The notes beneath the pieces are model-generated. The model did not search any database. It was not told where the DNA came from and saw only the letters and a program-made list of their open reading frames with translations. The position numbers and the translations under genes are program-made. A DNA stretch of 64,000 bases, from contig NC_092354.1 in NCBI RefSeq assembly GCF_963676685.1, positions 63,364,001 through 63,428,000 of the forward strand, written 5' to 3'. This DNA comes from Mytilus edulis. Taxonomy: Eukaryota. Below, in pieces: positions 260 through 56,789 of the stretch (position 1 is the first letter of the stretch; every line of letters starts with the position of its first letter).

Positions 260-313
260 TTAATTTGAATTGCTGTTAACCAGACATACTACTAAGATGA
301 TTGAAAGCTTCAT
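260..313 (-). pseudogene. Truncated signal-peptide exon of the GGN/W-rich family (MKLSIILVVCLVNSNSN*)
   Basis: ATG AAG CTT TCA ATC ATC TTA GTA GTA TGT CTG GTT matches the family exon 1. It then jumps into intron-homologous sequence and stops at TAA 260-262, so the donor is lost. The promoter homologue follows at about 314-560 with an altered TATA (TATAACA). Confidence 0.8.
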
Positions 314-866
314 ATTTCTCTAAATTTCTACTTTGAGAGATGGGGTACAGACGTGTTATAGTCTTGATGAGGACATACAAACAATAATATTAGTAAAACC
401 ACGGATGTGTTTTAATTGATATGAATAGTTCACGTCAGTGATGGGGCGTTTTCCGATATTTAAGCACAATGATTGTTTTGTAGGTTGTACAGTAGAAATG
501 ATCGCTGAATAGGTACAACCTTCTATCATATTTTCTCCGGAAAGGGAAAAGTCAAATAAACAGAAAGGAAATTCAACATCGTCAATTGTTCGAAGTGTCT
601 TAAAGCGTTATTATACTTGAAAACATATGCAGGAAACGAATTCAACATAACCACCAGGCTTAAAATATAGAAACAGACACGTTTGTTTCACTTTCATTAT
701 GTAAACTTCTTTCTTCATTTTACAGTAGACAGTTAGGACAATAATGGAGAAAAAAAATAAATGTATGTGGTAAATACGACATGGCATGTTGCGTTAACGA
801 TATATAAGTATGGTACTTATTATGCTTAAGAAATAAAATTGTTTGTCATTTGAATAAACATGTTAA

Positions 867-1458
867 GGTGGTATGGGAGTCTAAAATAAAAATGATAGAA
901 TTTGTTCATACTTTGCCAAAACGTAGTATCTATTGATATATGTTGAAAAATATAATAAAAATGATAGGTCACCGCGCATTTTCTCAAGCTACAGGACGTG
1001 ACAAAATGACACATTTTGTATGGATTATACAGGAAAAACACCATTTTGTGATTAGAAACTAAACAAAATGATAGAATTGTTATATACTTAAGGAAAAGAT
1101 AGCTTTCAGACAATGCTTTGAGAAAATCAAAAGAAAAGATAGGGTCACCGTACGTTTATTCTGGCTAAAATACAAAATAGGAAAATTCCATGTAGAATCC
1201 TTCAGAAAATGCACTGTTTTAGAGTTACCTCCTCTTAAAATGCCAATTAAAATTTTTTTTTAAAACAACCAAAAATAATCAACACTTGCAAAAATATTAA
1301 TATTTATAAGTTATATTCTTATAAATTGGTTCTTTTAAATGAAAATTCACTTTGAATATCTGCATTCCTGCATCAAATTTTGCTAACTTGATAGAAAATC
1401 TGGACCTTGAGTTCTCTGTTTTTTACAATCCAAGATGGAGGAAGACACCCATACCACC
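867..1458. mobile_element. Non-autonomous TIR DNA transposon, TTAA-flanked (Kolobok-like)
   Basis: Terminal inverted repeats ggtggtatgggagtct / agacacccataccacc, with ttaa on the left and ttga on the right. The element is absent from the paralogous position near 6880. Confidence 0.65.
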
Positions 1459-2900: not shown

Positions 2901-3897
2901 TTAACCAAGGGTCAAGGGTATCCTCAAACATTAACTTTGTCGAAAGCCGATGTAGAAAATTTAATAATTTAAAAATGATTTTTTTCTTTTATAAACGACC
3001 ATAAAGTCAATCAAATAAGTAAAATGTAAACACTAATTTTGCTAATTTTAACATTTGTTCTGAATGTTTATCGAAATGGTCATGCTATCCATCGAAATTA
3101 TTTTCCAAATTCATATTTCTTTCCTGTGTATATGATTTGTGATTGATAAAAGTCCAGTGACACATATTTCATGAATGTTCTGGGTTATTTATGATTTGTG
3201 CACGTAACCTAATATTAGTGGGGGTCATTGATGTACTATTATTCCGTAATTAGAAATAAACAATAAATTTAGATAAAGTTATATAGGAAGGTAGCATAAT
3301 ATTGCTGACAACTTGTATATTTATGGATTATAACATGTCTTTTTTCCATATTAGCTCGGTATTACCCCGAGATTGCAAAATGAGCTAAAGGCGCAAGCCG
3401 AGTTTTCATATTGGCCGAGGGATTTTACCAGGGCTAGATTTAGGAATGAACGCAGACTGTAACAATTGTGATTTTCGAAAAAAAAGTAACCTTACCGTAG
3501 CAAGATAATATGTCATTTCTTTCAGTTTTTGATGGTTCAATGTAAGATAATGGCAGATTTGAAAAGTGTCTGTAAAAGTTTTGGACGTCAACTTGTTTTA
3601 AATTCGGGATGATTTTAAGTTTGGTGTAGAGTATATAAATCTATATTGTTGAAGACGGTATAAAAACCTCTAAATGTTCGCTTGTTTATTTGTGTTGTCA
3701 GGTACTTTCTTATTGGTATAGTTACCACACTCCAATATTCAATAAGTTCACGTTAGAGCATTAAACAAGATAATCACATGAGAACAAAATTTTATTGATA
3801 TGTTTTTGTGACTTCAAAACAAATAAATCAGAAGAAATATTTGAATATTTTGTCACATGTTCATTTGTCATTAGTTCGAAACTCTGTCAGTTATATC

Positions 3898-6287
3898 TTA
3901 GCGTTTTCCACCATGTCCGCCATTTCCACCATTCCAACGACCACCGTTTCCTCCATAACCTCCATATCCACCGTTTCCTCCATTACCACCGTCCCAAGTA
4001 CCACCATTTCCACCTCTCCCATAATTCAAACTGTCTCCTCCATTCCCGTCTTTCCAAGTACCACCATTTCCACCATTCCATCCGTTTCCTCCATTCCCGC
4101 CATTCCAAGTACCACCGTTTCCGCCATTTCCAAATCTGGGCTTCCAAGGCTTTGGTGGTCCTTAAAAATGAAACACGTCATAATTAAAGTGTTGGGTCAA
4201 AAGTAATCACTTCTTGAGAAATCAAAATTATTAAAACCTGTTTTACGAAACCACTTAAGAGAGAGCAAAAACGTGGTCTCTAAAGACAGGTGGACTTTAA
4301 AAACAGGTTCATTTTTTTTTAAAATGTACTCAAGAGAGATCTAAAATTAATTGTCTTACAACACATGTTTTTGTTTTATACAGGTGTTCTCTTAAGCATG
4401 TTTGACTGTTATTACAAAAAATATGCTAACGGTATCAAGTATGTATATGAAGCAGTACTCCTGCAAAACTTTCTCAAAGACGAAAGGAAATATTCAATCA
4501 TAGTTCAGATGTAGTGGTCAAGTCCTAAAAATAGCATTTGAAGGAGTTCTTCAATCAAATCTTTACTGACATTAAGGATGCTACTGATAATAGGTTTATA
4601 TTTTGAACTTTTGTTTAAAAAATCACCACAGAGAAACGACTTCAAACTGTATCTATGACAAACCTGACTAATTCAGTTTAATATTTTAACTTTTCATCTT
4701 ATAGTAGGAACAGATCTGAGTCTCAATCGTGTGACATATTTATCAATCGGCAATCCTCGGGAGACTCCGCTACTCTCCTTCTATGAGGTTCGGAATCGGC
4801 CGAGTTGTGACGAATGACACATTTATGTCTCAAATCATGCCTCGCGCATGTGCATGTTTAACAATACAAACTATATTATTTTCATAATCGTATTGGAAGA
4901 CAGTTTGCATAATTCAGAGATGTTTTGTCAACACTGATCGTTTATAGCCACAAAAAAGCTTTTTTAAATAGATAACTTGGACAATTTTTACGTTTGGTTG
5001 TAATACGTAGTACGGTTAATCACAAGACATACCAATTAAGCTGAAAAAGCTACATTATGACGATGTCAGCATACGCATCGTGCCGTCGTCAAAGTTGAAT
5101 TCAAACATTGATGTATCTTAGTAATACAAGAAAAGAAAACTCAAAACACATCAATTATAAGAGGAAAACAACAAACGACAATGCAACATACATGAAAAAA
5201 CTATAAGTTATTGTTCATGACTTGTCACAGGACATTTTAAGAAAAAAAGATGGGCTGTACCTGGTTTGAATGCTAGCCGAATCTCGCTATTTATGGTAAT
5301 ATTAAATATACCGCTAAAATGACAAAAGTTAATGTACATGACGGGAAAACAATATGACGGAGAAATACATAAATAAATAATACAAGAGTACATTTCGACG
5401 CACGAGTGTAATAACGCCACAAAAAGTAACGTCACAGAGAAAAAAAATCAATAAACCTTCCAATAAGGTTTCAATTATGGTATTTAATGTAACTTATAAG
5501 AATTACAAGAATATTAATATAGAATTGTTATGGTAATTGTGCAACTACCTATGTCGGCCTTTTTACCTAATCAAACTGTGTAATAAACAATCCTGTGCAC
5601 ATAGTTGATTTAAACTAAAATCATACAAGTGAACTGGGAGATTAATTATCTCTTCTTTTAGATACGAATAAAACATAAAAAAAGAATCACAAAAACAAAC
5701 ATTAAGACACAAAACAATATCCGATCAGATTTACAAATACAACTTATTAACTAAATATGCGAATTCACAAGTAGAAAAGCAGTCATATTAAGGATTAGGT
5801 CACGTTAGGTACTTAAAAGACAGGACAACATAAATGGTAAACCACAATCTAAGACGTGGAAAACATGTCCTTAGTTAGGACTAGCTTACACACACATATA
5901 TTGTCATATTGATTAGCAGTCTTTTATAAAACTTGTGTATGTTATACTTGTTTGTATTTTAAAACTTTTAATACATCGAGATCGGAATAAAATAGTACGC
6001 TTCTTTAGCAACTGAATAAGAATAGAAGTAAGAAAAACTGCGTTTAAGATAAAACATTTGAAGAAATAAATACTGATGGCAATGTATTGATTAAATTTAT
6101 TTGCCATTTACCAGATGTTCAAGTAATACTTTAAAACAAACTCCACAGTATAATGATATAGAGAAATAAGATTTATGAAATCATGTGAAAAACATGAATG
6201 ATAATTGATATACATTTACTTACTTCTAACCCAAGTTCCAGAAACTGCTACAACCAGACAAACGACTAAGATGATAGTAAGCTTCAT
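3898..6287 (-). CDS. Secreted Gly/Asn/Trp-rich protein A1, 108 aa; exons 6224-6287 and 3898-4160
   Basis: Exon 1 encodes MKLTIILVVCLVVAVSGTWVR, then A|gtaagt. Acceptor tttttaag|GA restores the frame: RPPKPWKPRFGNGGNGGTWNGGNGGNGWNGGNGGTWKDGNGGDSLNYGRGGNGGTWDGGNGGNGGYGGYGGNGGRWNGGNGGHGGKR*. TATATAA at 6327-6333; AATAAA at 3791-3796. Confidence 0.9.
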
Positions 6288-6540
6288 TTTCCTCGTAAGT
6301 TCTACTTTGTGAGAGGAGTACAGATGTTATATAGTCTTGATGAGGACATATAAACACGGATATAAGTAAGGCAACGGGATGCATCTTAATTAATATGAAA
6401 AGTGTATGTCCGTCATGGGCAGATATCCGATACTTGAGCACAATGATTATTTTGTAGATTGTACAATAAGACAAAATGATGGCTGAATAGGTACAACCTT
6501 CTATTATATTTTTTTACGTATAAGGAAAAAGGAAAAAAAA
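6288..6540 (-). promoter_or_regulatory. TATA-containing proximal promoter of A1, conserved across the family
   Basis: TATATAA lies about 40 nt upstream of the ATG. Collinear conserved blocks are shared with the promoters at 18164, 22136, 33181, 45874 and 55683. Confidence 0.75.
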
Positions 6541-8360: not shown

Positions 8361-10468
8361 TAGTCCTGTAAAATTATTAATACTGCATACATAGCAAAAT
8401 GGAGCAACGAGTAGCTTTTAATTGATAACTAGTACCAATTAAAACGCATATCTTGTAATTAACGAAAAACATGTTGATAGTTAACACAAAGATTCATATA
8501 ATACTATATAAATAGTATAGTATGTTGGTCCTGGTGTGAGTAGACGGTTATGTTCAAATTACTGTCTACATTAAAGTTCAATTGTGGGTCCTATTTGCAA
8601 TCTGCATTAACATTCATATCAATGTCATTCAAAACCATATCTATCGATCGGAATTTAAAACAAATTCTACCTTAAAGCTAAATGTTAAATTGCAAGATAC
8701 ACACACTATTCGTACAGTGTAGGATAAAATAGAAGTTAATTTTCCCATTGGCTCTTTCTAGTGAGAGAGCAATATATCTTTTGTAGTCTGAGTGGAGTTG
8801 AAATTATACGGATATTGATAAAAATAATAAAATGCGTTTAAATTGGTTTGAGTATTTATCGACATTTGCAGATTTCCGATACTTGAGCGATGTTACAATG
8901 GTTGTTTGTTGTACACAATGACGGAAAGTGTAGCTGATTTGATACTAGCTTTAGTTTTCTTTTGAACAGGAAAAAAGAAAAAGTTAAATATTAATACATA
9001 CAATTTTATAAAATGATGTGTCAGTCTTAAACAATGAAACAAAACCACATACCATAAACATGTAGTCGGCTGTTACAGATCTTATATCGAGCATATAAAA
9101 CAAGTCAATTGAGAAAACTAACGATATATTTGTAACAAAACAATCAACAACAAAAAAGTGATATACATGAACTAACGACATCCACTGAATTACAGGCTCC
9201 TGTATTGATACTATGTTAACTTGACCATTAAATCGTCCGTTCATATATTTGACAGTATATCTATATTGGTTAACCCACAATACTGCATATTTGCAAATAA
9301 ATGCAACATATTCCTTCTTATATACAAACAATATAAAAGAATTCAAATACAGCCGAATGTGGGGATGTGTGTGTAGGAACAAAACCTACAGACAAATTAC
9401 ATAATAACGTGAGTTCATGAAAAGCCGATTGGCATTTTACAATAAAAGCTGTGAATATGCTTGTAAAATTCTGCATGATATTATGAGTCTGTTTACATGC
9501 ATAAAGGTTAAAAACCTAAGCGTCAGTAAAAAGTCGTTAATCATCGAAATGCGCATGTATTGCATTGAAATCGCCACGAATAATGTCATTGTGTACATAT
9601 GCGTGATGTGGTGAGCTATTCAATCTACATTCCCAATATAATTTGCCAATATCAGGTGAAGTCACACTTTTAATATCTAAAGAAAATTGTTGCTTTTTGT
9701 CGTGCTCGAACACGTATCGTAGAATATCACGCTAAATTCATTTTGAAGACGTATGGTTAATTTCCATTTAGTTCAGGTCACACTGTAGCTAATTCACAAA
9801 CGTTGCTTTATTTTCAGATGCATTACTTAAAGTTCTAATGCGATAGTTCTGTATTTTAATATCCGGTTAAGATATGTTTCGGTGTAATTTCATTTGAAGT
9901 AAAATTATGTTTTAAAAGAGAGGCGCAAGATACCAAATGGACATTCAAACTCTAAGTTTAAATTTCCGATATTGTGTCAAAACTGTCTTCAAAAGCAAAG
10001 AAGAGCGCAGAGTAACATTTGGATTGTATTGATAAGTGAAAATAGTTCAAACTCAGTTTAATGTATGTTTTTATACTCATTGGTATACAAGTTCATAAAA
10101 GAGCGTTCGAAGCACCTTTAAAGTGGCGTTCACTTTCTCTTTCAGTTTCTACTGGTAAGTTGTAAGTTGAAGGCAGATGTTTTATAGATTCTGTGAAAAT
10201 TTTGGACAACTTGTTTACAATACGGGATGATTTACAGTTTGATATAATGCATATATATATATATATACATACTTAAATTGACGACATATTCTAACCATTA
10301 AGTGTCTTTTGTTTATTGGTGTTGTCAGGATACTTTCTTATTGGTATATACACTCTGATTTTCAATAAGACATTTTTAAGCATTGGCAAATCAAAAACCC
10401 AAGTAAACACATTTCAATTTTTCTTTTTTTGTGACTTAAAAAAAAAAAAAAAAAAAAGTCAATATATT

Positions 10469-11745
10469 TTAGCGTTCTCCACCATGTCCGTCATTTCCAC
10501 CATTTCAACTTCAATTGTTTCCTCCACGACATCCATATTGACTGGTTCTTCCATTTCCACCATTCCAACGACCACCATTTCCTGCACGACCTCCGTGCTG
10601 ACCCGTTCCTCTATGTCCACCATTCCAACGACCACCATTTCCTCCACGACCTCAATGCTGACCGTTTCTTCCATTTCCACCTTTCCAACAACCAGCATTT
10701 CCTCCACGACCTCCATGCTGACCGGTTTCTTCATTTCCATCATTCCAAGTATCACCATTTTCTCCACGACCTCCATGCTGACCGCTTCCTCCATTTCCGC
10801 TATTCCAACGACCACCATTTCCTCCACGACCTCAATGCTGACCGTTTCTTCCATTTCCACCTTTCCAACAACCAGCATTTCCTCCACGACCTACATGCTG
10901 ACCGGTTTCTTCATTTCCATCATTCCAAGTATCACCATTTTCTCCACGACCTCCATGCTAACCGCTTCCTACATTTCCACCATTCCAACGACCACCATTT
11001 CTTTCACGACCTCCATGCTGACCGCTTCCTCCATTTCCACCATTCCAACGACCACCATTTCCTCCACGACCTCTATGCTGACCGTTTCCTCTATTTCCAT
11101 CATTCCAACGACCACCATTTCCTCCACGACCTCCATGCTGACTGCTTTTTACATTTCCACCATTCCAACGACCACCATTTCCCCCACGACCTCCATGCTG
11201 ACCGGTTCGTCCATTTCCACCATTCCAACGACCACCATTTCCTCCATGACCTCCATGCTGACTGGTTCCTCCATTTCCACAATTCCAATGACCAGGATTT
11301 CTTCCACGACCTCCATGCTGACCGCTTCCTCCATTTCAACCATTCTAACGACCACCATTTCCTCCACGACCTCCATGCTGACTGCTTCCTCCGTTTCCAC
11401 CATGCCATGTATCACCATTCACACTATTCCGACCATTTTCTCCATTCCCACCATTCCAAGTATCACCATTCACACCATTCCGACCATTTTCTCCATTCGC
11501 ACAATTTCCTGCATTCCCACCGTTTTCACCAATCGAACCATTTGCCCCATTCCCACCATTCAAAGTATCACCATTAACACCATTCAAGGTATCACCATGT
11601 CCAACATGTCGGCCATTTTCACCATTTTCACCATTTTCATTATTCGAACCGTGTCCACCATTCCAAGTACCACCGTTACCACCATTTCGACCGTTTCCTC
11701 TATTTCCTCCATACCACGTTTCAACATGTCCATCATTTCCAGTTC
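10469..11745 (-). pseudogene. Repeat-expanded terminal exon of family member C (about 15 x 60-bp units, GGNGGSGQHGGRGGNGGRWN); six in-frame stops and no recognisable exon 1
   Basis: Phase-1 acceptor ggattacag|GA ACT GGA AAT at 11745. The frame is unbroken to GHGGER* at 10469-10471. Premature stops at 11345, 11336, 10832, 10652, 10511 and 10505. Intron and far-upstream homology is present at 13260-13820, but the signal exon and TATA block are missing. Confidence 0.8.
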
Positions 11746-11857
11746 CTGTAATCCAAGCAGATGTAGAATAGTTTAATGAAGAAGCAGATGTATAATAATA
11801 TATTATAATGACGAGTTAAAAGTAATTGACTCTTATACTATATAATTGAAATAAATA

Positions 11858-16253: not shown

Positions 16254-18163
16254 TTAGCGTTTTCCACCATGTCCGCCATTTCCACCATTCCAGCGACCAC
16301 CTTTTCCTCCACGACCTCCGTATCGACCGTTTCCTCCATTACCACCGTCCCAAGTACCACCATTTCCACCTCTCCCGTAATTCAAACTGTCTCCTCCATT
16401 CCCTCCGTTCCAAGTACCACCATTTCCACCAGTATGTCCGTTTCCTCCATTCCCGCCATTCCAAGTACCACCGTTTCCACCATTTCCAAATCTGGGCTTC
16501 CAAGGCTTTGGTGGTCCTTGAAAATGAAACACGTCATAATTAAAGTGTTGGGTCAAAAGTAATCACTTCTTGTGAAATCAAAATTATTAAAACCTGTTTT
16601 ACGAAACCGCTTAAAAGAGAGCAAAAATGTGGTCTCTAAAGACAGGTGGACTTAAAACAGATTCAATTTATTTCAAATGTACTCAAGAGGGATCTAAAAT
16701 TAATAATGTTACAACACAGGTTTTTGCTTTATACAGGTGGTCTCTCAGGCATGTTTGACTGTTATCACAATACATATGCTAACGGTATCAAGTATGTATA
16801 TGAAGCAGCATTTCAACAAAACTTTCTCAAAGACGAAAGGAAATATTCAATTTTAGTTCAGATGTAGTGATCAAGTCCTAAAACAGCATTTGAAGCAGTT
16901 CTTCAATCAATTCTTTACTGACATTAAGACAAACCTGACTAATTCAGTTTAATATTTTAACTTTTCATCTTATAGTAGGAACACATCTGAGTCTCAATCG
17001 TGTGACATATTTATCAATCGGCAATCCTCAGGAGACTCCGCTACTCTCCTTCTATGAGGTTCGGAATCGGCCGAGTGGTGACGAATGACACATTTATGTC
17101 TCAATTCATTCCTCGCGAATGTCCATGTTTAACAATACAAACTATAATATTTTCATAATCGTATTGGAAAACAGTTTGCATAATTCAGAGATGTTTTGTC
17201 AACACTGATCGTTTATAGCCACAAAAAAGCTTTTTTAAATAGATAACTTGGACAGTTTTTACGTTTGGTTGTAATACGTAGTACGGTTAACCACAAGAAA
17301 TACTAATTAAGCTGAAAAAGCGACATTATGACGATGTCAGCATACGCATCGTGCCGTCGTCAAGATTAAATTCAAACATTGATGTATCTTAGTAATACAA
17401 AAAAAAAAAACAAACCAAACGGCCTCTCCACCTAATTAAACTGCGTAAAAAAATCCTGTGTACATAGTTGGTTTTTAACTAAAATCATACAAGTGCACTT
17501 GGTGATTAATTATCTGTTCTTTTACATACGAATAAAAGATAAAAAAAAATAACCACAACAACAAACAATAAGACACAAAACAATATCCGATCAGAATTAC
17601 AAATACAACTTCTTAACTAAATATTCGAATTCACACTTAGTAAAACAGTCATATTAAGGAATAGGTCACGTTCGGTACCTAAAAGACAGGGCGACATAAA
17701 CGGTAAACCACAATCTAAGACGTCGAAAACATGTCCTTAGTAAGGACTAGCTTACACACACATATAATGTCATATTAATTACCAGTCTTTTATAAAACGT
17801 GAACTAAAACTTGTGTATGTTATACTTTATGTATTTTAAAACTTTTAATACTTCGGAATAAAAAGTACGCTTATTTAGCAACTGAATAAGAATAAAAAAT
17901 AAAAAACTGCGTTTAAAATAAAACATTTGAAGAAATAAATACTGATGGCAATGTATTAATTAAATTTATTTGCCATTTACCAGATCTGTTCAAGTAATAC
18001 TTTTAAATAAAAACTCCAGAGTATAATGATATAGAGAAATAAGATTTATGAAATCATGTGAAAAACATGAATGATAATTGATATACATTTATTACTTACT
18101 TCTAACCCAAGTTCCAGAAACTGCTACAACCAGACAAACGACTAAGATGATAGTAATCTTCAT
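16254..18163 (-). CDS. Secreted Gly/Asn/Trp-rich protein A2, 108 aa; exons 18100-18163 and 16254-16516
   Basis: MKITIILVVCLVVAVSGTWVR A|gtaagt ... ttttcaag|GA, giving RPPKPWKPRFGNGGNGGTWNGG...GGRWNGGNGGHGGKR*. TATATAA at 18203-18209; AATAAA at 16147-16152. Confidence 0.9.
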
Positions 18164-18752: not shown

Positions 18753-18993
18753 AAAATTGAGAATGGAAATGGAGAATGTGTCAAAGAGACAACAACCCGA
18801 CCATAAGGCAGACAACAGCAGAAGGTCACCAACAGGTCTTCAATGCAACGAGAAATTCTCGCACCCGGAGGCGTCCTTCAGCTGGCCCCTTAACAAATAT
18901 ATACTAGTTCAGTGATAATGAACACCCTATTAAACTCCAAATTGTACACAAGAAACTAAAAGTTAAAAAAAATACAAGACTAACAAAGGCCAG
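18753..18993. mobile_element. Short interspersed element insertion (copies at 21301-21543 inverted and 48005-48215)
   Basis: aaattgagaatggaaatg...gagacaacaacccgacc...cagctggcccct. It is absent at the paralogous site near 6825. Confidence 0.75.
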
Positions 18994-41300: not shown

Positions 41301-41745
41301 ATTTACAATTTAAAGTTCACATATGGTCAGTTTTGGTAATGCGGTCAAATAATTTTGTTGTACAAGTCAGCTGGAGGTATCAAAACTACTGAAATTTTGT
41401 TACGTATCAATATTTTGAATAAAATGAGGACATGCTGGTATCCTAAATTTATGCGAACCAAAATTTTTTGTTATTATATTGCAATTTTGCTGTCCATTGT
41501 CAGGATTGTATTATACATTGAATCCTGACATAAAAAATATGGCTGATTTACTATGCGGGTATATAGATTTACAAATAAAAGTGCATATATGGTCAGTTTT
41601 GGTGGATGCGGTCAAATAATTTTGTTGTACAAGTCAACTGGAGGCATCAAAACTACTGAAATTTTGTTACGTATCAGTATTTTGAGTAAAAAGAAGACAT
41701 GCTGGCACCCTTAATTTAGGCGAACAAAAATTTGTAGTCATTATT
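38345..41745. repeat. Satellite array of about 267 bp, about 13 copies, with an 800-bp three-unit higher-order repeat
   Basis: The motif atgcgggtatatagatttacaaatt recurs every ~267 bp. Near-identical ORFs at 39989 and 40789 are exactly 800 bp apart. Confidence 0.92.
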
Positions 41746-43702: not shown

Positions 43703-43896
43703 TTTATTTGTTTATTAGGTATCTAAAAACACCAACACATAAAGACGCATATGGATAGATGTATTTATATTTTTTTTACATTAAATAATATATACAAGTA
43801 AATGCAAATAAACGAGTATAATCCTGTCACATGTTCAAGTGTCATTAGTCTGGAACCTGTTCAGTGATTATACCATGATTTTCACGGTTTCCTCTA

Positions 43897-45873
43897 TCAC
43901 CCATTAAAATTTCTACCATTCCAAAATACACTGCCTCCGCCATTTCCGCCATTCCCACCATTCCAAACACCACCGCTTCCACCATTTCCACCATTCCAAC
44001 TGCTTCCACCATTCCCACCAACCCAAACGCCACCGCTTCCTCCATTTCCACCAGATGGTTGCCATGTTGAAGTTCTTGTGTTCCAACCTCCCGTTCCACC
44101 ACTATTCCCTTGATGACAACCTAAATATAAAAGATATATGGTCTAGTGCTTTCAACAAGTTTAATCCATTGAACAGAGCGTTAACATTTTTAAATTATAT
44201 TAGATTCAACATGCCAAAGAGTTTCAAAAAACTAAACAATTTCAACTGTAATTTATTATAGGTCAAATGCATTTTTATAATAAACAATATTCACTTTTAA
44301 GGAAATTAATCGATATGAGATTGTGTTGATCTTTCAAAACATGTTGTGATAAACCTTTGAATGGTAGGAAGTTCTTTCTACAATACTGGTACCTTGTGAA
44401 TCACATGTGAAATATATTGTTAAAGATATTGTCGGCATAAGTGTGTAGATACACTTATCCATAACATTTGCATTCATTTAAGTACAATATTGTAGATTAT
44501 GAAATTGTTATGTCAACTTTCCCACGTATTTCGTGACAACAGAAGGTAAAACCAAAGTAAGGAATTGGCCGTTGTAGAATCTAAAGCATCATGGGTAATT
44601 TCATTGTTCGTACCTCAAAATGAAAATAACGTCACGTCATTGGTTAAATTTCCATTGTTTATGAAATGTTTAACCAATCAGGACGTTTTGGTGTACACTT
44701 TTGAAAATATTACCCAGAATGCATTAGATTCTGAAACGGTTTTGATATAAAACTTTTACTCACATATGTCACTACATTCTCTGAAAGTTTTGAAACGATT
44801 TGCGTTTCCCTTACAACCTTTGTAGTGAAATTCCTCACACCGTCCGGTTGCCGTGTTATAGTAGAAACGTCTTAACCAGGAGGAACACTGTCCTGAATCT
44901 GGTGGTAAGTTACAACTTTGTTTAGGTGTTGGTCCTGGAAAAAAACAATAACATATGGTGGTAAGGTACAATTAGATTAAGGTTTTGTTCCTGGAAAAAT
45001 ATAAAATCTGAAAGTAAAGTATGGTGGTAAGGTACAATTAGGGTCAAGTTTTGTTCCTGGAAAAAATATAAAATCTGAAGGTAAAGTACAATTAGGGTCA
45101 GGTTTTGTTCCTGGGAAAACATAAAATCTGAAAGTAAGGTACAATTAGGGTCAGCTTTTGTTCCTTGAAAAACATAAAATCTGAAAGTAAAGTATGGTGG
45201 TAAGGTACAATTAGGGTCAAGTTTTTTTCTGGAAAAAATATAAAATCTGAAGGTAAAGTACAATTAGGATCAGGTTTTGTTCCTGGGAAAACATAAAATC
45301 TGAAGGTAAGGTACAATTGAGGTCAGGTTTTGTTCCTGGAAAAACATAAAATCTGAAGATAAGGTACAATTAGGGTCAGGTTTTGTTCCTGGAAAAACAT
45401 AATAGCTGGTGGTTAGGTACAATTAAGTAAACAATTGGTCCTAGAAAAACATAATAGCTGTCATATTTTATTGTGAAAGTAATCTATTCCCCCTTAATAT
45501 GCAATAGCCACAACAGATATGAGATATCATTTTTTTTTCTAATTATAAGCTTTATAAAATATAGTACCCATAGAGTATAAAATAATCAAATGTATGTGTA
45601 TTAAAAGACAGCTAAATATAGTCACATTCAAGCCTAATTAACGTGCAAACTATTTAAACTTTAAAACAAACACAACCTAAAATGCAAAATCAATGAGTGG
45701 AACATTTTAAAGTAAATTAGCAGTCTTAGGATAATCATATAAATATAGTATAAAACTTGTAAAAAAAAAGGTGAACAAAATAACTATTTTTTATAATTGA
45801 TATACTTACGCCTATTCCAAGTTCCAGATACTGCTACAATCAGACAGGCGACTAGGATGATATAAAGCTTCAT
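43897..45873 (-). CDS. Secreted Kunitz/BPTI-domain plus Gly/Asn/Trp-rich protein K1, 152 aa; exons 45810-45873, 44764-44934, 43897-44120
   Basis: TATAAAA at 45913-45919. MKLYIILVACLIVAVSGTWNR C|gtaagt; ttttccag|GA, RPTPKQSCNLPPDSGQCSSWLRRFYYNTATGRCEEFHYKGCKGNANRFKTFRECSDI T|gtgagt; tatttag|GT, CCHQGNSGGTGGWNTRTSTWQPSGGNGGSGGVWVGGNGGSSWNGG...FWNGRNFNG*. All introns are phase 1. Confidence 0.88.
44764..44934 (-). CDS. Kunitz-domain exon of K1
   Basis: Canonical C-x8-C-x15-C-x7-C-x12-C-x3-C spacing, with FYYN and YKGCKGNANRF motifs. P1 is Ser by alignment to BPTI. Confidence 0.93.
44935..45460 (-). repeat. Intronic minisatellite (52-66 bp, about 9 extra units) built from a splice acceptor plus the Kunitz exon start
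   Basis: Unit ttttccag|GA ACA AAA CCT GAC CCT AAT TGT ACC TTA (CCA CCA) resembles the true exon start GA CCA ACA CCT AAA CAA AGT TGT AAC TTA CCA CCA. Confidence 0.85.
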
Positions 45874-48800
45874 ATTTCTATAAGCCTCTAAATTGAAAGA
45901 GGGTTTCATGTGTTTTATAGTACGAGTGGATTTGAAATATTACGGATATTGGTAAAGCGACGATATGCGTTTTTGAATTATCTATCTAACATCATGGACA
46001 GATTTCCCCCACTTCAGCTCTGGTTATGACTGTTTCTATTGTACAATAAGACAGAAATGATTGCTGATTGGGTACAGACTTATACAATCTTTTGATACGT
46101 TTACGGAAAAAGGAAACATAAAAAACAAGGTTCAGGGGTTATTTATCACTCTTATTTAAATCAATAGCTCATACTAAAAACTTGATTTAATGTGAAGTGT
46201 TTATATCCACAATTTTAGACAACACATTACCTATGAAGACTGGTATATAATGGGGCAGATGTCAACATTGAAAGATTTATCTCAAAAATTATCATTTAAA
46301 CTATTTTAAAATTAATACGTTAATTCGTGTAAAATTATCTAAAATGTATCATTATGCATGTTATGTGATCATGGTTGTTTCAATGTGTATATTTGTCAAT
46401 GAGATTGGGTATGACAGTGTTAATTTGATTTATTTGACGATCTGCACTTTGTGTATTTTACTTAAATCTTAAGGCATAAAAAATCGATCTCTACCAAATA
46501 ATTCCAATTAAACCTATGTAGTAAGCAATAATCCTTGGCGAGGTAAAGACCTCAATATAATTTTGAGATGAAGAACCGTTGATTCTGGTTGTTGAAAGGT
46601 AAAAACTTAATTATAAATTTCCAGTCTTTTATATAAAAAGATATTGACCTACAGATCAATGTTAGGACTTTGGGTACTGTTCAATTTGAAACATCAATGC
46701 AAATAGTTATAAGATTACTTTCCATTTATTACTCTCGAGTAAAAAGAAAGAGAAAATAGTAAGCGGGCAATCAGAAACCGTCAGTCCTAAAAACAATTTA
46801 ACATAACGTTCAAAATAGACACGATGAAAAACAAACAAAAACAAAAAACTATACAAAAAAAAATATTACACAGAAACTTTGTGCAAGGAGTATTGACGAA
46901 GGATTGACAATATACCTAGTCTTTTGATAACAAAGAGACTTGACAATAAACAGTACACGAAAACAACAAGTGTATGCATCCTATAAAGTTCCGCTTGGCG
47001 GTAACGTATAATTAATTAGTATGTAAACATACATATAGTTATGAACCATGTTGTATACTTAAGGCATTAGTAATATACCGCTGTTCAATAGTCATAAATT
47101 GATTTCACTGAAACCAATCGGTGTCACAGATCCGGGTCACAAAATAATTTTGTATAAAAAAAAACAATTGTGTTTCGCAATTAAAGTTGAATTATAATCG
47201 ACAGAATAGCCAATTGCAGATGAAATCATATAAGAAATATTTAATATAACGAATTTGCTGTTGACTACTAAAAATAAGCCTTGTCTGTACCTTGTTGGTG
47301 CACCCGATCTCATTTTAAGGTGGATAAAAACTGAATTTTTGATAATTTGGCACAATGCGAGTAATTACCCCACCCCCTCCCTAACGACAAAATTAAAAAA
47401 AAATTAAAAACCACAAAAAATAAAAAAAATAATAAGAAGCACATTATTAACCGATCACAGATTATATTGTTAGAAAAAGCTACGTTGTATCTTACAAGTA
47501 ATAATAATGTGATAGTTGAAGATGTCATTCGACAATGACAACTGTACATTGACAGGAAAATGTATTATGACAAGCTAAAGACGACATTTTTGTGTTTTGA
47601 GAAATTTTTGGATTAATACATGGCTATATGGAAATAAAATGTAGACTCTTTTATAGATATAGGAAGATGTGGTATGAGTGCCAATAAGACAACTCTCCAT
47701 CGAAGTCACAATCTATAAAAGTAAACCATTATAGGTCTTTTATGTCTATTATCTAGACTATTCAATATTCGAACTCAGAAAGGTTTTAAGAACCTTCGGA
47801 TTTTGAACATGCATGTGTTTTTCCTTTGAGGTATTTAGAGTTCATGGCAAATCTTCGGGAGTCCCTCTTAAATTCATACGTGTACATACACTTTCTAATA
47901 AATAAAAATAACACTTTATATATTTTGTGCGAAAGCTTTTGTGGATTAACCTTCATCATAAAAGCTCAAACCCAGACATTTTAAGGCCCAATATTGTTTT
48001 TTATTTTAGTTCTTTTATATGTTTTAGAGTTATGTATGGCGTCCATTATCACTGAACTAGAACACATTTTTGTTTAGGGGCCAGCTGAAGCACGACTCCG
48101 GGTGCAATATTTTATCCCTGTGTTAAAGACCCATTGATGGCCTTCGGCTATTTTCTGTTTTTTTGGTCGGTTTGTTGTCTCTTTGACACATTCCCCATTT
48201 CCATTCTCAATTTTACAAAAGTGACAAATAATAGTTTATAAGCTTGACATATGTTTTATGTTATCGTTTTGTCGTTACAGAGGCATTAGCTGTCAAATTC
48301 ATGTTCACCAATTTGACTCAAATCATCATATTTGATTTATGACATAATTACACGTTTATCAAAATTACAATAAGTATAAAATAAACCATTAACAAGACAA
48401 AGACTCGATAATAATATAACAGCATTTCGTGTGTATTTCTAAGTCTTGAAGCCATCTAATCAACCACTGAGATTACCTCCGAAGACTGCCGACGGTCATA
48501 TAACCCGTTATGTACATAAATGAAAATTTTAATAGATAGCAACGACGTGCAATTGGATATTTATATGTGTGTTTGGTTTCATGTTAAAGGTTAACAAAAT
48601 AAGTAAATCATCGTTTTTAACAGCGGTATACTACTGTTGCCTTTATTTACCTGTAAAATAATGATTTTTTGCTGATTTAATCAATTAACGAAATGCTTCA
48701 CCCTTGTTTCACTTTCGATATCGACAATCTTTTCTTTTTATTGCTGAACATGCCTAGTATATGCGTAAGCCATTTACAGCTAAGTTCACATAAATAATAT

Positions 48801-51290: not shown

Positions 51291-52903
51291 TACAAATTCC
51301 TAACAATGCAAAATCGGCCTTAGCCGATTTGTGTATGATCTTTTTGAGCAACTTTGGCTTGTAACATACATTAGACATGTATTGTCGAAATGCGCATCTG
51401 GTGCAAGAAAATTGGTACCGTTAATTTTATTAAATGCTCTCAAATTGTGGTTATACATTTTGAATACCTATTTATTTGTCTCCAGCATAAAGGTGCATGG
51501 TACTGTACTTGAGCATACAACCATTCCATTAAAGGCAAAAAATGGTTTTATATATCAATAGATATGTTATTCTTCAACGTATTTTTTACAGTTCACACAG
51601 TATATGTGCAGTTTTATGGTCTTTACCATGATGTTACATAAACGTCTGAGTATTTATTCATTTTTAAATTATGGCCCTTTTTTGTCCTAAAGGGGTTTGT
51701 TCATTTTTATAAAATTCCCTTCAAGCGTCACTGAAAAGATTTTATGTGTTGATATTTGTTGAAATCAAATAGTATCAGGTTGAACCTTTCCCGTTCAACT
51801 AGTTATATCCCATTTTTTTCAGATGAAAGCTCACATAATCAGCATAATGACGACCCTTGTTCATGTAGGTGGTAATATACTGTATAGCTTTGAAGGCGTT
51901 GACAATACGACACTCACCCGATAAGTTAGGTATTTATGAAAATAAGAAAATATGGCGGGGTTGCCATTGAGACAACTATTCACAAGAGACCAACATGGCA
52001 TTGTTCCTTTTTTTATTAACTTGATTCTTAACTGCTAGAAACCCCATAGAAACATGAAGGTGCCGTTGTGTATTTTACGTCCTTGAATAAAGGTGTTTCA
52101 TTAGTTTTTTGTCAAGTGCGTTGTGTTGTCTGTTGTTCTTCAAATTTTTGTTTGATTGGATACTTGTCCTTTTCTCTCGTTTCTCCTTTACCGTTTTGTG
52201 TTAGTACCAAACGACGATCATATTAAAACAACAATTAGCAATGTGAGTGGGAGAGATAAGTAATGATGATCATATTTTTATTTTTAGGCGTTTTCATTAA
52301 ACAAAAAGTAGTATTTTGGTAAACATATGGCGGTATTATGTTCCGACTTGCAGTTTTACTTGCAGAAAATGTTCTATACCTAATGAAAATAGTTAAACAT
52401 CTCCCCTTTTTACTATTTGTAGCTAGATTTGGTGGTATCTTTAGAGGTCGTTCGCGCCTTTCGAACATTTGAGTTGTCAACACATTGCTTTTCCAATGAT
52501 AATGCGAATGATATTGCAGGCAGAACGTCTATAGATATTAAGGTGATTGTATTTTAGCACGTGGTCCATATTTGAAAAAAAAATTAAGGTGGATTTGGAT
52601 ATGATGGCCAGTTTATTCTTATATTGTAAAAAGAAAAGCAACTCCGTTCCACAGGCTATAAACGATTGAACGAGAGAGATTAATTCTAACGACGCAAAAA
52701 ATGTTGCATTGATTTAATTCAATAAATTCTTTATTCGACAAAAAGTATACAAATAATGGTAATGAAAATGTTTGGCAGTCAAATTCTCCATCTTAGATAT
52801 GCATATTACATGTTGCATGTTGTTTATACAATTTTTTTTCATCACATGAATTCTTAAGAAATACTAGTAGACGAGAATGTGATATTAAGCGTCAAGGCCA
52901 TAA

Positions 52904-55682
52904 TCACGCTGGGGATGGTTTTTGGCCTTGAGTAGACATCTCATCGGTACCATCACTGTTTCCGCCATCTCCTCCACCACCACCATTTCCACCATTTCCA
53001 CCATTACCGCCATTTCCTCCATTTCCGCCATTTCCACGACCTTCAGTAACACCACCATTCCCACCATTTCCGCCATTACCTCCATTTCCTCCACCATTAT
53101 CACCACCACCATTTCCGCCATTCCCACCGCCTCCTCCATCACCTCCATTACCAAAACCGCCATCTCCTCCATTACCTCCGTTTCCCCCATCACCTCCATC
53201 ACCAAAACCGCCGTTTCCACCGTTTCCACCGCCTCCTCCGTTACCTCCGTCACCAAAACCACTATCTCCACCATTTCCGCCATTCCCTCCATTACCTCCA
53301 TTTCCGCCAGATGGCATCATTGTTTCAGTTGTTGAGTACTTGCCAACCCCTCCATCCATATTTGGTGTCATGCCTCCATTAGAACTCATGTCGATTTGTC
53401 CTTCGCCTAAATAATAAAAATAACATCTAATTGTTATATATATTTACTGTTTTTTTTTAAATTATAGATAACCCATTTATAACGTTCGATCAATACTATT
53501 TACAAATGTTGGAAAACGATGGGAAAATTCATACTCATTAATTGAAAAACCCGACATAGAAAACTAAAGATCGAGTAATACGAGCCCCACAAAAAAACGG
53601 AAATGATTTTAAGTTCTCAGGAAGGGTAGTCAGATCCTTCTCTTTATGTGCAACCCGATGTATTGAGTTAGTTAGTGGTTATTATTGCCAGGAGTAATAT
53701 GCACGCCTTGTTCAAACAATCAACATTATACAAATCTGTCTCTACATACTTGGACATTGAAGTTGTTTGCATATGATCATATATTGGAATGAAAAATATT
53801 TGTATTAAGTTTTTAAATGTTGATTTGTTCAGTATACATCTAAAAACTTCCTGTTTCATTGTGTTTATAAAAAAAGAAAAAAATATACAAATTTAAGCTC
53901 CCCCCTCCGTTTTCGCCATTTCTCTCACCCTCAACATGCTCAAGAAAACAAATATCATAGATGTGAAAAACAAATCTGTTACTTACATGTATCTCTGCAT
54001 TTTTGTAAAGTTTTGAATCGATTGGAGTTTCCCCGGCATCCTTTGTACCGGAATCTCTCGCATGCTCCGGTTTCGGTATTAAAGAAGAAACGTCTCAACC
54101 AGAAGAAACATTTGCCTGAGTCTACTGGTAAACTACAATCCGGTTTTGGTATATTTATCTTGTATTATTATAAAATACGAAATGCTCGTTGTTTTTAAAG
54201 GTCGAAATGATCGTTGTTATTTTCAAAGCTAGTATGATATGTAAGAGGAACGTTTTACGAAAATATGCATATAACGTGAAAACTTTAATTAAAAGTTCCT
54301 TTCACTTCCTTTTTAAACACGTTTCTGGAACATATTCTCGTAAATAATGTTCAACGTTTCTCAATGATTATCTTCTGTCATTCTATACATTAATTTTCAA
54401 TGGTTAACGTCGTCCGAGTCAAGTATGACCACCTATGGTGTGCAGTGTGTGTGACATATACAGACCTAATTGTGCAATAACTATATCACATTTAATAGTC
54501 TCTTTTAAATTCATTCCAGATATCTTGGATTTAAAGAAAAATGATACGGACAATTGTTAATCAATAAAGACCGTTTGTAAAACTCTAGATCTATGTTTTT
54601 GCAACTTATCGGGCATTTGGTAGCTGTTTCTAAATATTTGTACTGGCAGGAAATTGCTTCTGTAGAGCAATGCTTATGATAAGGGTCTTTTGTTTTAAGG
54701 GCATACGATACAGTTTTGATCCTGTATTTACAGTTTGATGAAAATTTCCATATAAGCTATTTTTTGCCTGCTTAAATCAAATATGTAATACAAAATATAC
54801 CTTCATGTGCTACTTTGTTAGTTAAATGATGTCGAAATTTTGTATATTTGCCCAAAATTTGGATTTGTGGCCGTATTTTCCCTTTCGAAAGAAAGCCATA
54901 ACTTTTTTGTTTTAAAAGATAAACACAAATTGTTTTTTGTTAAATAGTTTGTAATTTTTGTATTTTATAAGTATCCTATGCATTTTTTATTCAGAAATAG
55001 CTCATATTTATCAAATGGTCATGATTTAAGAAAAAAAGCGTATGTTTTTGCTGTATATTTATCAAAATTAAAAAAATTTCTCCATTTACAGTTTTATAAA
55101 ATTTGGTCCACATAATCTCCTTGCAAAATGAAACAAAATGTCTTTTTAAAAAATAGGGGTCCATGCACTCGTTTACAAATTAAATCAGTTTGAATGATAA
55201 AAAATAGTCGAAAAATGAATCTTTTCCCGATATGTCATAGTTTGACGTCGCGAAAATAACATTTTACGTTAGCAACGTCATTATCTCCCCTGTAACTGTA
55301 TCGTATGCCCTTTAACAAAAACAATGAGAAATGAAAAAATAATTAATAATAATTAACATAAAGATTCATTTTAAAGTGTGATAATTTCAGAAGCAAAGCA
55401 AAATCGATCTAGCGTGCACGTGAATACTCAGGTCTAGATATCTTTTAAATTAAAATGATCATAATTATTTATTTAAAATGTAAAACACGACAACAATTGA
55501 ACTCATCGACAACAAAAAGACAAAACATTTACAAAGGAGCTTAAATTATAAAATATAAATAAGAATTAAAATTCTGAAATATTAAGGAACACATATTTTA
55601 TATACGTACGACTTCTTCCCCAGTTCCAATGTCCAGAAACAGACACAATCAGACAGACAGCTAAGGTAATTGATATCTTCAT
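52904..55682 (-). CDS. Secreted Kunitz plus acidic Gly/Asn/Asp-rich protein K2; exons 55610-55682, about 53987-54158/54166, 52904-53406
   Basis: TATAAAA at 55719-55725. MKISITLAVCLIVSVSGHWNWGRS C|gtacgt. The Kunitz exon ends ACA T|gtaagt; ttatttag|GC gives CEGQIDMSSNGGMTPNMDGG...(GGN/GGD)n...QGQKPSPA*. AATAAA at 52730-52735. The Kunitz acceptor is uncertain. Confidence 0.8.
53987..54158 (-). CDS. Kunitz-domain exon of K2 (not in the ORF track)
   Basis: INIPKPDCSLPVDSGKCFFWLRRFFFNTETGACERFRYKGCRGNSNRFKTLQKCRDT(C). Canonical Cys spacing; P1 is Phe. Confidence 0.88.
54699..55311. mobile_element. TTAA-flanked non-autonomous TIR element (Kolobok-like) in K2 intron 1; one-ended relative at about 58690-58962
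   Basis: ttaa|gggcatacgatacagtt ... aactgtatcgtatgccct|ttaa. Confidence 0.8.
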
Positions 55683-56789
55683 CTTTTGTTGGTTTAAGTC
55701 GAGAGAGAGGTACAGATGTTTTATAGTCTGAGTGGAGGTGTATTACTACGGATATTGATAAGGCGACGGGATGTTTAATGAGTCATTTTAGATATCAAAC
55801 GTGATATACAGGTTTCCGATACTTCAGATTTGTTTATGATTGATTTTATAAGTAGTACAATAAGACAAAAACTTATCAATAACAAATTTTAATCATTCTT
55901 TGATTCGTATAAAGTATTAATAATATTCAAAAGTACAAATATCATTCAAGTCTACTGGTATATGCGGACTCTTATAAATGTTTTATCCATCACCGAATAA
56001 TTAATGTAATGAAATATTTGTTTTCCTATGACTACCTCTGACAAAAAGCAGCTGTTGATGACATATATCTCAATACAGCTTCTGTTGTGTGTACGTACGA
56101 ATACTTCGTTGTCCGTCGGTCAGTATATTAATCGAAGTTCAAAAGCAGTCAATCAGTATTATTTGCGCTCTTCGTCCGTATTCTTGCACTAGCAATTCAC
56201 AATGATCGTGGTACATTATGCACCGTATTATCAACTCTTTTCATACTATTCCTAAATGTTGATTCATTTCTTCCGCATTATTCTAAAACTCTTTCAATGC
56301 GTTTAAACCGTATGAAAATTAAAAGAGAATTTGGAACTTATCTCAATTAATACCGAATTTTGTGATTATCCCTATTTACTACGACATTTCAATATTCTGC
56401 TTGACATGGCTTAGTGTTTACAGACGAATAACCAAAAAAAGTCCCCCCCCCCCCCGCCAAAAAATAGAAAAAAAAGAAATAGCAAACATAAAAAAGCAAA
56501 CATAGACAATATTGAGAATATTAAGATATACTAGTACAATAGAAGAATAGAAAAATGACTCTAAATTCAACTTTAAAAAATCCCCGTAGAAATCCTTATC
56601 ACCGGTACATATATCCCTATATTTTTCATTCTCCTATACACTTTATTTTTAGTGGCAAAAATGCAGAAGAAAAAGTTCTAGTCAGGGTTCTATTTCGACC
56701 GAAATCAGCAACGAAAACCAATTAAACAAAATTGACCTCGTTTCTTTTCACATTATTTTTAAAAGTAACATAAAATTGAATACTATTTT

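Follow-up and report, generated by a model that had tools for sequence, protein, structure and literature searches.

Mytilus edulis serves as a model in studies of bio-adhesion and biomineralisation. Among the low-complexity proteins of molluscan shells, KRMPs are small (~10 kDa); their signal peptide is immediately followed by a Lys/Trp lead and then by a Gly-rich domain, and the C-terminus bears a short basic motif (PMC3896809). An M. edulis mantle isotig is reported to combine a GN repeat with a KRMP-like Lys/Trp lead (PMC3896809). The shell matrix of M. edulis contains Kunitz proteins (PMC5854119), and the repairing mantle is enriched in inhibitor terms (PMC8194122). In host defence, type II/VI crustins consist of a Gly-rich region plus a WAP domain, and hyastatin has a Pro/Arg-rich part besides its Gly-rich and Cys-rich ones (PMC11767717). 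According to a 2025 review of antimicrobial peptides (AMPs) in mussels, no Gly-rich AMP is known in bivalves, and the review interprets the Gly plus dibasic pair of mussel myticalins as an amidation signal (PMC12294457). Here, we describe a cluster of secreted Gly/Asn/Trp-rich proteins in M. edulis, in which at least one copy has acquired an exon for a Kunitz domain and yields a spliced chimeric transcript.

A tandem gene cluster on chromosome C11

The analysed window (64,000 nucleotides of chromosome C11, 63.36–63.43 Mb) contains five cleanly spliceable genes (A1, A2, A3, B4 and K5), one doubtful gene (K6) and three broken copies. Six gene models and at least three pseudogene fragments had been proposed by a preceding sequence-only reading; five of the models splice cleanly, K6 remains doubtful, and three broken copies were indeed located. 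The cluster is longer than that reading placed it, because it continues to about −20 kb beyond the window, and this upstream extension holds an annotated gene and an intact long member with a 340-codon open frame (charge +26). One more family copy lies at 76.2 Mb. Pseudogenes accompany birth-and-death dynamics in the cluster. Of roughly ten copies, a single one is represented by a protein record (XP_071139162.1, the paralogue just upstream of the window), and its automatic name, ‘hnRNP 87F-like’, is misleading. This record was the sole detectable relative in ~1.8 billion representative proteins, a search that returned no characterised protein matching the family, and literal motif searches of the literature (~8.4 million papers) found no match to the family motifs. 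The earlier reading had likewise seen no match to nacrein, TMP-1, mfp-3 or molluscan Kunitz inhibitors. None of the tail exons, nor P0001, contains a Pfam domain. The family is Mytilus-restricted and duplicates in tandem; its members encode secreted proteins and have the promoter, the signal exon and the GGN-repeat tail in common.

The signal exon (MK[LI]x[IL][IT]L..CL[VI]) occurs seven times in the window, six times on the minus strand (at 272, 6246, 18122, 33139, 45832 and 55641) and once on the plus strand (22137). The common form is 64 nt long and ends in phase 1. Gly/Asn-rich terminal exons (coordinates with each gene below) are in frame, and lie 1.4–2.3 kb downstream on the same strand. 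The upstream 300 bp can be aligned across 7/7 signal-exon copies, each promoter having a TATA-like box at −45 to −49 and a conserved block, CCGTYGCYTTAY..ATATCCGT, at a fixed distance of −91 to −69. Given that these cis-elements are common to the copies at fixed spacing, co-regulation of the family genes is plausible. Introns are in phase 1, with N|GTAAGT donors and acceptors that supply the two bases finishing the split codon. In each unit, a conserved promoter precedes a signal-peptide exon, a single phase-1 intron and one tail exon, as had been claimed for promoter, signal exon and GGN tail.

In most cases, the encoded chain opens with a short Pro/Lys/Trp lead; it continues with (N)GGNGG spacers that are interrupted by Trp, Arg or Tyr every 8–9 residues, and usually ends in a basic GKR. 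Its length ranges from 70 to >340 residues through expansion of a 20-residue unit. Endings across the family are GKR, WKR or RGW, with GKR or WKR kept in six members. The composition is dominated by Gly (42–44%), with 13–16% Asn and 6–8% Trp, and the net charge is +4 to +10; Tyr (~2–4%) is outside the eight commonest residues in every member. AlphaFold2 with the family alignment gave a pLDDT of 36 and no structure, and the tail is predicted to be disordered.

The four genes lacking a Kunitz exon encode Cys-free proteins with 42–44% Gly and a pI of 10–11.8. A1 (3898–6524, minus strand, with its promoter reaching 6524; exon 1 6224–6287, exon 2 3898–4160) has a phase-1 intron and encodes a 108-aa protein ending in GKR, as does A2 (16254–18400, minus strand; exon 1 18100–18163, exon 2 16254–16516; 108 aa, pI 11.8). 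Both have the lead RRPPKPWKPRF after the signal peptide, and they differ by seven non-synonymous and four synonymous codons, several of which alter charge. A3 (21900–24517, plus strand; exon 1 22137–22200, exon 2 24318–24517) is arranged head-to-head with A2, and its 87-aa protein also terminates in GKR. The B4 protein (31513–33392, minus strand; exon 1 33117–33180, exon 2 31513–31751) has 100 aa, the lead HPKPKPKPQPDW, a PKPKPKPQP linker and RGW at its end.

Among the broken copies, the minus-strand copy at 272–536 keeps a promoter and a signal exon (272–313) with a deletion and an in-frame stop, and the tail exon of this copy is found immediately beyond the left edge of the window (L003:2398–2697). 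A broken long-type member (10219–11815, minus strand) consists of a 60-bp (20-aa) repeat array at 10492–11815, of which 15 copies at 10492–11407 are interrupted by stops, followed by a family-type 3'UTR (10219–10450); neither a promoter nor a signal exon was found for it. An orphan fragment at 28149–28361 (plus strand) corresponds to the start of a long-type tail exon, with no signal exon or promoter nearby.

A Kunitz exon within the single intron

K5 (43707–46103, minus strand) comprises exon 1 (45810–45873) with a 5'UTR, a Kunitz exon (44764–44934; 171 nt, phase 1-1), a tail exon (43900–44120) and a 3'UTR that extends to about 43707 and contains AATAAA; its protein has 151 aa, a pI of 9.5 and seven Cys. 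The sequence-only reading depended on the existence of spliced transcripts, and contigs from three studies under two species labels (runs X1, X2 and X6) contain the signal exon, Kunitz exon and GGN tail of K5 in one spliced mRNA, with junctions (45810|44934 and 44764|44120) exactly at the predicted GT-AG sites. RNA depth was 837/568/12.8 on the exons versus 3–15 on the introns (exon depth 50–100x intron depth), and the raw RNA run X21 contained no K5 exon reads. Intron 1 includes a minus-strand minisatellite (44935–45460) with units of 53–66 bp that contain copies of the acceptor and of the first Kunitz codons, and of these acceptors only the last (44934) is used in RNA. In run X2, a short stretch of the K5 tail is also matched at very high depth, at most a hint at co-expression of A/B and K genes.

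K6 (52904–55900, minus strand) has a signal exon (55610–55682), a Kunitz exon (53987–54158) and a tail exon (52904–53406). Its Kunitz exon is 172 nt long, not 171 nt as first described, and joins the tail in phase but the signal exon out of phase. No canonical site for an in-frame signal-to-Kunitz join was found, so that K6 is doubtful and may be broken. The K6 tail differs from all others, being a Trp-free GGN/GGD chain that is acidic (pI 4.05, charge −13). The proposal that K-type proteins carry the same tail as the other members therefore holds for K5 but not for K6.

The optional Kunitz exon itself is well defined: the K5 and K6 exons matched Pfam PF00014 with 70.7 and 66.9 bits (cut-off 21), this being their sole Pfam match (no WAP domain), and K5 is spliced in RNA. 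Both fit the spacing C-x8-C-x15-C-x7-C-x12-C-x3-C by regular expression, which is the six-Cys pattern of classical Kunitz/BPTI proteins (e.g., SmCI, boophilin and TFPI), and SmCI (4bd9) matches them with E=5e-35 over three domains. They depart from the classical type in that the intron splits the codon of the sixth and last Cys (T|GT in K5, T|GC in K6), K5 has a seventh Cys, and both carry a long Gly/Asn tail predicted to be disordered. A basic P1 residue (Lys or Arg) is the criterion for trypsin-type inhibition. At this position, directly after the second Cys, K5 has Ser and K6 has Phe instead, so any inhibition by these domains would not be trypsin-like. The promoter and exon 1 of K5 and K6 are ~70% identical to those of the A/B genes, and their Kunitz exons are mutually closest in the genome (64% versus at most 52%). 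A symmetric 1-1 Kunitz exon within the only intron of the family is a case of exon shuffling, and a single insertion of this exon into the intron gave rise to both K5 and K6.

Candidate functions of the family

The most likely reading, which we hold tentatively and at somewhat less than even confidence, is that the family forms a self-associating secreted matrix or coating of the KRMP/shematrin kind with a tethered inhibitor. Its proteins would be secreted in bulk, and aromatic and cationic ‘stickers’ separated by Gly/Asn spacers would mediate mutual association into an extracellular condensate, matrix or coating. The mantle would be the most likely source, and the product a shell- or periostracum-type framework like that of the Gly-rich basic KRMPs and shematrins of pearl oysters. 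With a tail of the same kind and an additional unpaired Cys where domain and tail meet, K5 would place a serine-protease inhibitor inside the material and shield it from proteolysis. Tail disorder, Gly/Asn/Trp composition and charges are consistent with a self-associating material, and the long member (+26) and the K6 tail (−13) imply that oppositely charged partners exist. The DOPA cross-linking typical of KRMPs, shematrins and foot proteins is unlikely because the family is low in Tyr. No Gly/Asn/Trp-rich protein is listed in the layer-by-layer M. galloprovincialis shell proteome (PMC4517812), perhaps because such chains are poor tryptic substrates. Gly-Lys-Arg at the C-terminus classically signals amidation in peptides of secretory granules, and would suit a soluble peptide more readily than a framework protein.

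That ending belongs to the main rival, possible but improbable on balance, in which the A-, B- and long-type proteins would act as Gly-rich, cationic, Cys-free antimicrobial peptides; after signal cleavage, the C-terminal Lys-Arg would be trimmed and the preceding Gly amidated, and K5 would be a crustin-like Gly-rich/inhibitor chimera that also blocks microbial proteases. The properties of Gly-rich AMPs (secreted, cationic, >~30–40% Gly, Cys-free) are all found in A1, A2, A3 and B4, and the 70–91 Trp-studded residues after the signal (44% Gly, pI 10–11.8), the Pro/Lys/Arg N-terminal motif, the conserved GKR or WKR of six members, the birth-and-death turnover and the seven non-synonymous and four synonymous codon differences between A1 and A2, several of them charge-altering, suit such a role. 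Arg-Arg followed by Pro is a poor convertase site, which counts against it, as do the anionic K6 tail and members with at least 340 uninterrupted repeat residues and no internal dibasic sites, which are not peptide-like. The gene design matches that of myticalins (PMC12294457), and the architectures of crustins and hyastatin provide a precedent for the chimera (PMC11767717). If so, which we rate with the same reserve, this would be the first Gly-rich antimicrobial peptide family in a bivalve, with the K5 Kunitz-Gly/Asn/Trp chimera as an independent molluscan counterpart of crustins produced by exon shuffling.

A byssal or foot-gland role, as coacervating adhesive or thread-matrix proteins in the style of mfp-3 and TMP-1 with K5 as a byssus-protecting inhibitor, is a good deal less probable. 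In its composition class (Gly, Asn, Arg, Trp, Pro), the family overlaps with mfp-3, but Tyr is very low rather than high as in mfp-3 and TMP-1, hence no DOPA chemistry is expected, and the signal peptide and sequence are presumably unlike those of mfp-3. Mussel foot transcriptomes are rich in tandemly duplicated protease inhibitors with a proposed function in byssus protection (PMC7971044; PMC5549309). Least credible, and very improbable, is a folded polyglycine-II bundle built on the GGN period, for example an ice-binding protein like that of the snow flea. The strict triplet period resembles Gly-X-X antifreeze proteins and M. edulis is an intertidal, freezing-tolerant species; however, the low pLDDT (36) without structure, the lack of a PDB sequence match at E<=10 and GGN runs of only 6–7 residues between aromatics speak against such a fold.

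Should the family be a secreted material, it would offer extracellular condensates a sticker-spacer chemistry that relies on Trp/Arg and does without Tyr, and a natural route for loading a protease inhibitor into a material; as host-defence peptides, it would fill a gap in the literature, where no Gly-rich AMPs are known in bivalves. K5 is a clean case of exon shuffling, in which the only intron of a small gene, itself in phase 1, received a phase 1-1 Kunitz exon; RNA confirms the product. The cluster illustrates that low-complexity secreted gene families escape current annotation.

Comparison with known systems

The Pinctada KRMPs and shematrins are, by description, also small, basic, secreted, lineage-specific multigene families with a short Lys/Trp lead, a Gly-rich low-complexity domain and a short conserved basic C-terminal motif (PMC3896809). 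A Lys/Trp lead is found in A1, A2 and B4, with a pI of 10 or above. In contrast, the mussel repeats combine GGN with Trp/Arg instead of consisting of GGY, there is little Tyr, and the C-terminus is GKR instead of RKYKY/RKKKY, without the R/K-K-Y signature. To our knowledge, there are no Kunitz-bearing KRMP paralogues.

Type II/VI crustins and hyastatin, like K5, are secreted and combine a Gly-rich region with a disulfide-rich inhibitor-type domain, and hyastatin also has a Pro/Arg motif (PMC11767717). The mussel domain is Kunitz, not WAP, it precedes the Gly-rich tail, and the phylum is different; this resemblance is one of analogy only. Myticalins, gill AMPs of the same genus, share tandem clusters with pseudogenes, a signal exon followed by a phase-1 intron and an exon for a Cys-free cationic peptide of biased composition, and a Gly ahead of a dibasic pair (PMC12294457). 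By description, they differ in that they are Pro/Arg(/Trp/Tyr)-rich, have 20–50 residues and bear an anionic C-terminal extension past the dibasic site, whereas the GGN family is Gly/Asn-rich, has 70 to >340 residues and places the dibasic pair directly before the stop. Nacrein, N66 and N16 are secreted molluscan proteins with Gly-Asn repeat tracts as well; unlike these, the mussel family has no carbonic-anhydrase domain (Pfam) or N16 framework, its repeat is GGN rather than GXN, and the A/B/K5 tails are cationic and Trp-bearing, the acidic GGN/GGD tail of K6 being closest to them in composition.

Cluster architecture and shared promoter

A six-frame scan of the window (30–36% G+C) recovered seven copies of a signal-peptide exon (MK-L/I-x-I/L-I/T-L-x-x-C-L-V/I ...VSG-T/H-W), with open frames rich in Gly (42–51%) and Asn (13–16%) lying 1.4–2.3 kb downstream on the same strand. 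The 300 bp 5′ of the ATG could be aligned in all seven copies, each of which retains a TATA-like element, ACTATA(A/T)AAC, at −45 to −49 and a promoter block (CCGTYGCYTTAY..ATATCCGT) at −91 to −69. The spacing of these two elements is unchanged in the two Kunitz-containing members (K5 and K6), even though their promoters are otherwise ~68–70% identical to those of the A genes. Because the sharing of signal exon, tail and promoter goes far beyond chance, the secreted family with a common promoter, signal exon and GGN tail proposed in the sequence-only reading is borne out by the scan and the upstream alignment.

Within the 1.37-Gb genome, in which the window occupies C11 63364001–63428000, the family is limited to C11 63.34–63.42 Mb, apart from a single copy at 76.2 Mb and remnants of the promoter at 53.1 Mb. 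To the left of the window lie the tail exon of a broken signal exon (position 272) and a long member (signal exon at L002:8755), which contains open frames of 106 and 340 codons built from a 20-residue unit (GGRGGNGGRWNGGNGGSGQH; charge +26). Inside the window, its broken counterpart at 10492–11815 contains many stops and lacks the 5′ part. The dispersed copy at 76.2 Mb (L004:1214–1564 + 9286–9321) has an intron of ~7.7 kb, and its tail runs 12 residues further, the GKR stop being gone.

Several repeats are interspersed with the genes. A 25-bp minisatellite (28512–28821; 12 copies, 155-bp higher-order period) adjoins an orphan tail fragment (28149–28361), a satellite with a 267-bp unit occupies 38349–41744 (12.7 copies, 92% matches), and tandemly repeated units of 133 and 166 bp at 59698–60371 contain an open frame that is likely repeat-derived rather than a gene. 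Long open frames (up to 493 codons) in antisense or other frames of the GGN arrays, at 10295–11773 (+), 3774–4203 (+) and 52888–53411 (both strands), were rejected as low-complexity artefacts.

Gene models and duplication

Donor sites read N/GTAAGT and fall one base into a codon, which is completed by two bases supplied by the acceptor. When exons were joined in a local script, open reading frames without an internal stop were obtained for the two-exon genes A1 (6224–6287 + 3898–4160, 108 aa), A2 (18100–18163 + 16254–16516, 108 aa), A3 (22137–22200 + 24318–24517, 87 aa; + strand, the others −) and B4 (33117–33180 + 31513–31751, 100 aa), and for the three-exon K5 (45810–45873 + 44764–44934 + 43900–44120, 151 aa). 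The RefSeq model of an upstream paralogue, XP_071139162.1, has an identical two-exon, phase-1 layout.

A1, A2 and A3 are duplicates of a whole unit, with introns that are 91–94% identical and tail exons that are 86–94% identical. A1 and A2 differ by seven non-synonymous and four synonymous codons, and several of these differences alter charge or remove Trp. A2 and A3 lie in head-to-head orientation (18164–22136), and their promoters are more similar (96.8%) than their exons and introns (86–92%), a pattern pointing to either gene conversion or recent duplication of the 5′ part in inverted orientation.

Signal cleavage is predicted at VSG/T (−3/−1 rule, by inspection), leaving A/B proteins of 70–91 residues with a disorder-type composition (Gly 42–44%, Asn 13–16%, Trp 6–8%, no Cys) and a pI of 10–11.8. 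Their N-terminus is TW-x-R-R/H followed by a Pro/Lys/Trp motif, and an aromatic or basic residue recurs every 8–9 residues between GGN spacers. GKR or WKR forms the C-terminus of six members.

Origin of the Kunitz-containing members

The last two genes, K5 and K6, have Kunitz-pattern open frames between their signal and tail exons (Pfam PF00014: 70.7 and 66.9 bits, respectively; cut-off 21), for which the nearest solved structures are SmCI, boophilin, and TFPI. In K5, the P1 residue is Ser and a seventh Cys is the first residue coded wholly by the tail exon; the codon of the final Kunitz Cys is split by an intron in both genes. Promoter, signal exon and tail repeats are common to K5, K6 and the A/B genes, and of the genome's Kunitz exons, numbering at least 94, those of K5 and K6 are mutually closest (64% versus ≤52% to the rest). 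On these comparisons, a single Kunitz insertion took place before the K5/K6 duplication. The K5 Kunitz exon (171 nt) is in phase 1 on both sides and sits in the family's sole intron, which is also phase 1. A symmetric class 1-1 module in a phase-1 intron is what exon shuffling classically leaves behind (Patthy). The K type thus arose by shuffling of a class 1-1 Kunitz module.

The Kunitz exon (53987–54158) and tail exon (52904–53406) of K6 are open and join in phase. However, the former is 172 nt long versus 171 in K5, and its sole acceptor is phase 0, whereas all usable signal-exon donors are phase 1; no in-frame canonical junction was found between the signal and Kunitz exons. Given this mismatch, K6 either contains an additional small, unseen exon or became disabled only recently. 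The tail of K6 also differs in its chemistry from the others (no Trp, 7% Asp, pI 4.05, charge −13).

Splicing and expression of K5

RNA evidence covers the K5 locus and comes from Logan contigs of three runs (X1, X2 and X6, representing three studies and two species labels) and raw reads of a fourth, X21. Single contigs in X1, X2 and X6 skip both 44935–45809 and 44121–44763, stretches whose ends are CT..AC on the + strand and hence GT..AG on the gene strand, showing that K5 mRNA joins the signal, Kunitz and GGN tail exons. The spliced transcripts sought for the family were thus found for K5, and the proposal that two members carry an optional Kunitz exon holds for this gene, with spliced RNA in three runs, but is doubtful for K6, for which no in-frame signal–Kunitz junction was found. 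The spliced form predominates (exon contig depths of 837, 568 and 12.8 versus 3–15 across introns), with retention of intron 2 at most ~2%. The transcript ends near 43707, beside an AATAAA, and only the final acceptor in the intron-1 minisatellite is used in RNA. Raw reads of X21 contained none on K5 exons, coverage being confined to an intronic repeat, so K5 expression varies by sample. One short part of the K5 tail (~43950) reached a depth of ~35,000 in X2. Since B4 and A2 are 88–90% identical to K5 there over 51–58 nt, a much more abundant paralogue is the best local explanation, which hints at co-expression.

Two further observations concern the second intron. Its repeat at 44518–44775 (~180–250 bp) reaches RNA contig depths of ~45,000 and appears in partial raw reads with unrelated flanks, and is therefore both dispersed and transcribed. 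It may be a MITE-like inverted repeat, to judge from a weak hairpin match to Rfam MIR1435 that falls below threshold (28 bits versus a gathering score of 94). Directly after the post-Kunitz donor, both genes have an in-frame stop (K5: TGT GAG TAA, 44760–44766; K6: TGT AAG TAA, 53983–53989), so that a retained intron would yield a complete Kunitz protein without the tail.

Relatives and naming of the family

Homologues were searched exon by exon, and joined proteins were used for composition and pI only. Among 5.8 billion clustered proteins, the A2 tail exon, XP_071139162.1, and the 340-aa long frame recovered XP_071139162.1 as the sole relative, and a phmmer search with this protein against 1.84 billion representative proteins matched only itself. 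It is annotated as 'heterogeneous nuclear ribonucleoprotein 87F-like [Mytilus edulis]' and is the only annotated family member, matching letter for letter a gene ~20 kb left of the window (L001:3751–3969 + 4865–4900). The protein carries a signal peptide and lacks an RRM (no Pfam match), and the name therefore reflects low-complexity similarity. Family tails had no match in Pfam, PDB sequences (E ≤10) or Atlas clusters; an ESM Atlas match (0.76) was dismissed as a low-complexity look-alike. The expected novelty relative to characterised families was upheld, in that protein searches returned nothing but this automatically named paralogue.

Literal motif strings specific to the family matched no paper in the library searched, shorter strings retrieved only degenerate primers and G-quadruplex notation, and a literature match for 'ribonucleoprotein 87F' with Mytilus was an unrelated proteomics table. 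'Glycine-rich protein' entries from M. galloprovincialis digestive gland and Mytilisepta gill, listed without sequences, gave no link to the family, and two shell proteome papers (PMC5854119, PMC4517812) mention no Gly/Asn/Trp protein. According to a 2025 paper, glycine-rich peptides are not known from any bivalve, mussels included (PMC12294457).

Possible function and comparison with known systems

We tentatively favour the view that the family forms a secreted matrix or coating that self-associates, and that the homologous tail and free Cys of K5 would carry the inhibitor into it. Evenly spaced Trp, Arg and Tyr in Gly/Asn spacers follow the sticker-spacer layout seen in low-complexity domains that phase-separate, a resemblance that also explains why the NCBI pipeline named the paralogue after an hnRNP. 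Unit expansion gives chains of 70 to >340 residues, and strongly cationic and anionic members coexist. As far as the descriptions in PMC3896809 go, the closest architecture is that of KRMP/shematrin, small basic Gly-rich shell framework proteins, and a M. edulis mantle isotig, known from description rather than sequence, combines a GN repeat with a KRMP-like Lys/Trp lead (PMC3896809). Kunitz proteins recur in the Mytilus shell matrix (PMC5854119) and in repairing mantle (PMC8194122). Together, these features are why the matrix reading is preferred.

A family of glycine-rich host-defence peptides is a less likely possibility, to which the size, charge, Pro/Lys/Arg lead and C-terminal Gly-Lys-Arg point, as do a gene design like that described for myticalins (PMC12294457) and the analogy with crustin/hyastatin (PMC11767717); however, some members are very long and the tail of K6 is acidic, both of which argue against it. 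A byssal role is improbable, given that Tyr is nearly absent. It is highly improbable that the tails fold as a polyglycine-II or ice-binding protein: AlphaFold2 on an eight-member family alignment returned no structure (pLDDT 36) and PDB sequences offered no counterpart, and this antifreeze-type fold was rejected for lack of support.

The family would gain in interest if the defence reading or co-assembly were confirmed. Lineage-specific, repetitive low-complexity secreted proteins are already known in molluscs, as are, in arthropods, Gly-rich antimicrobial peptides and chimeras of Gly-rich and inhibitor sequences.
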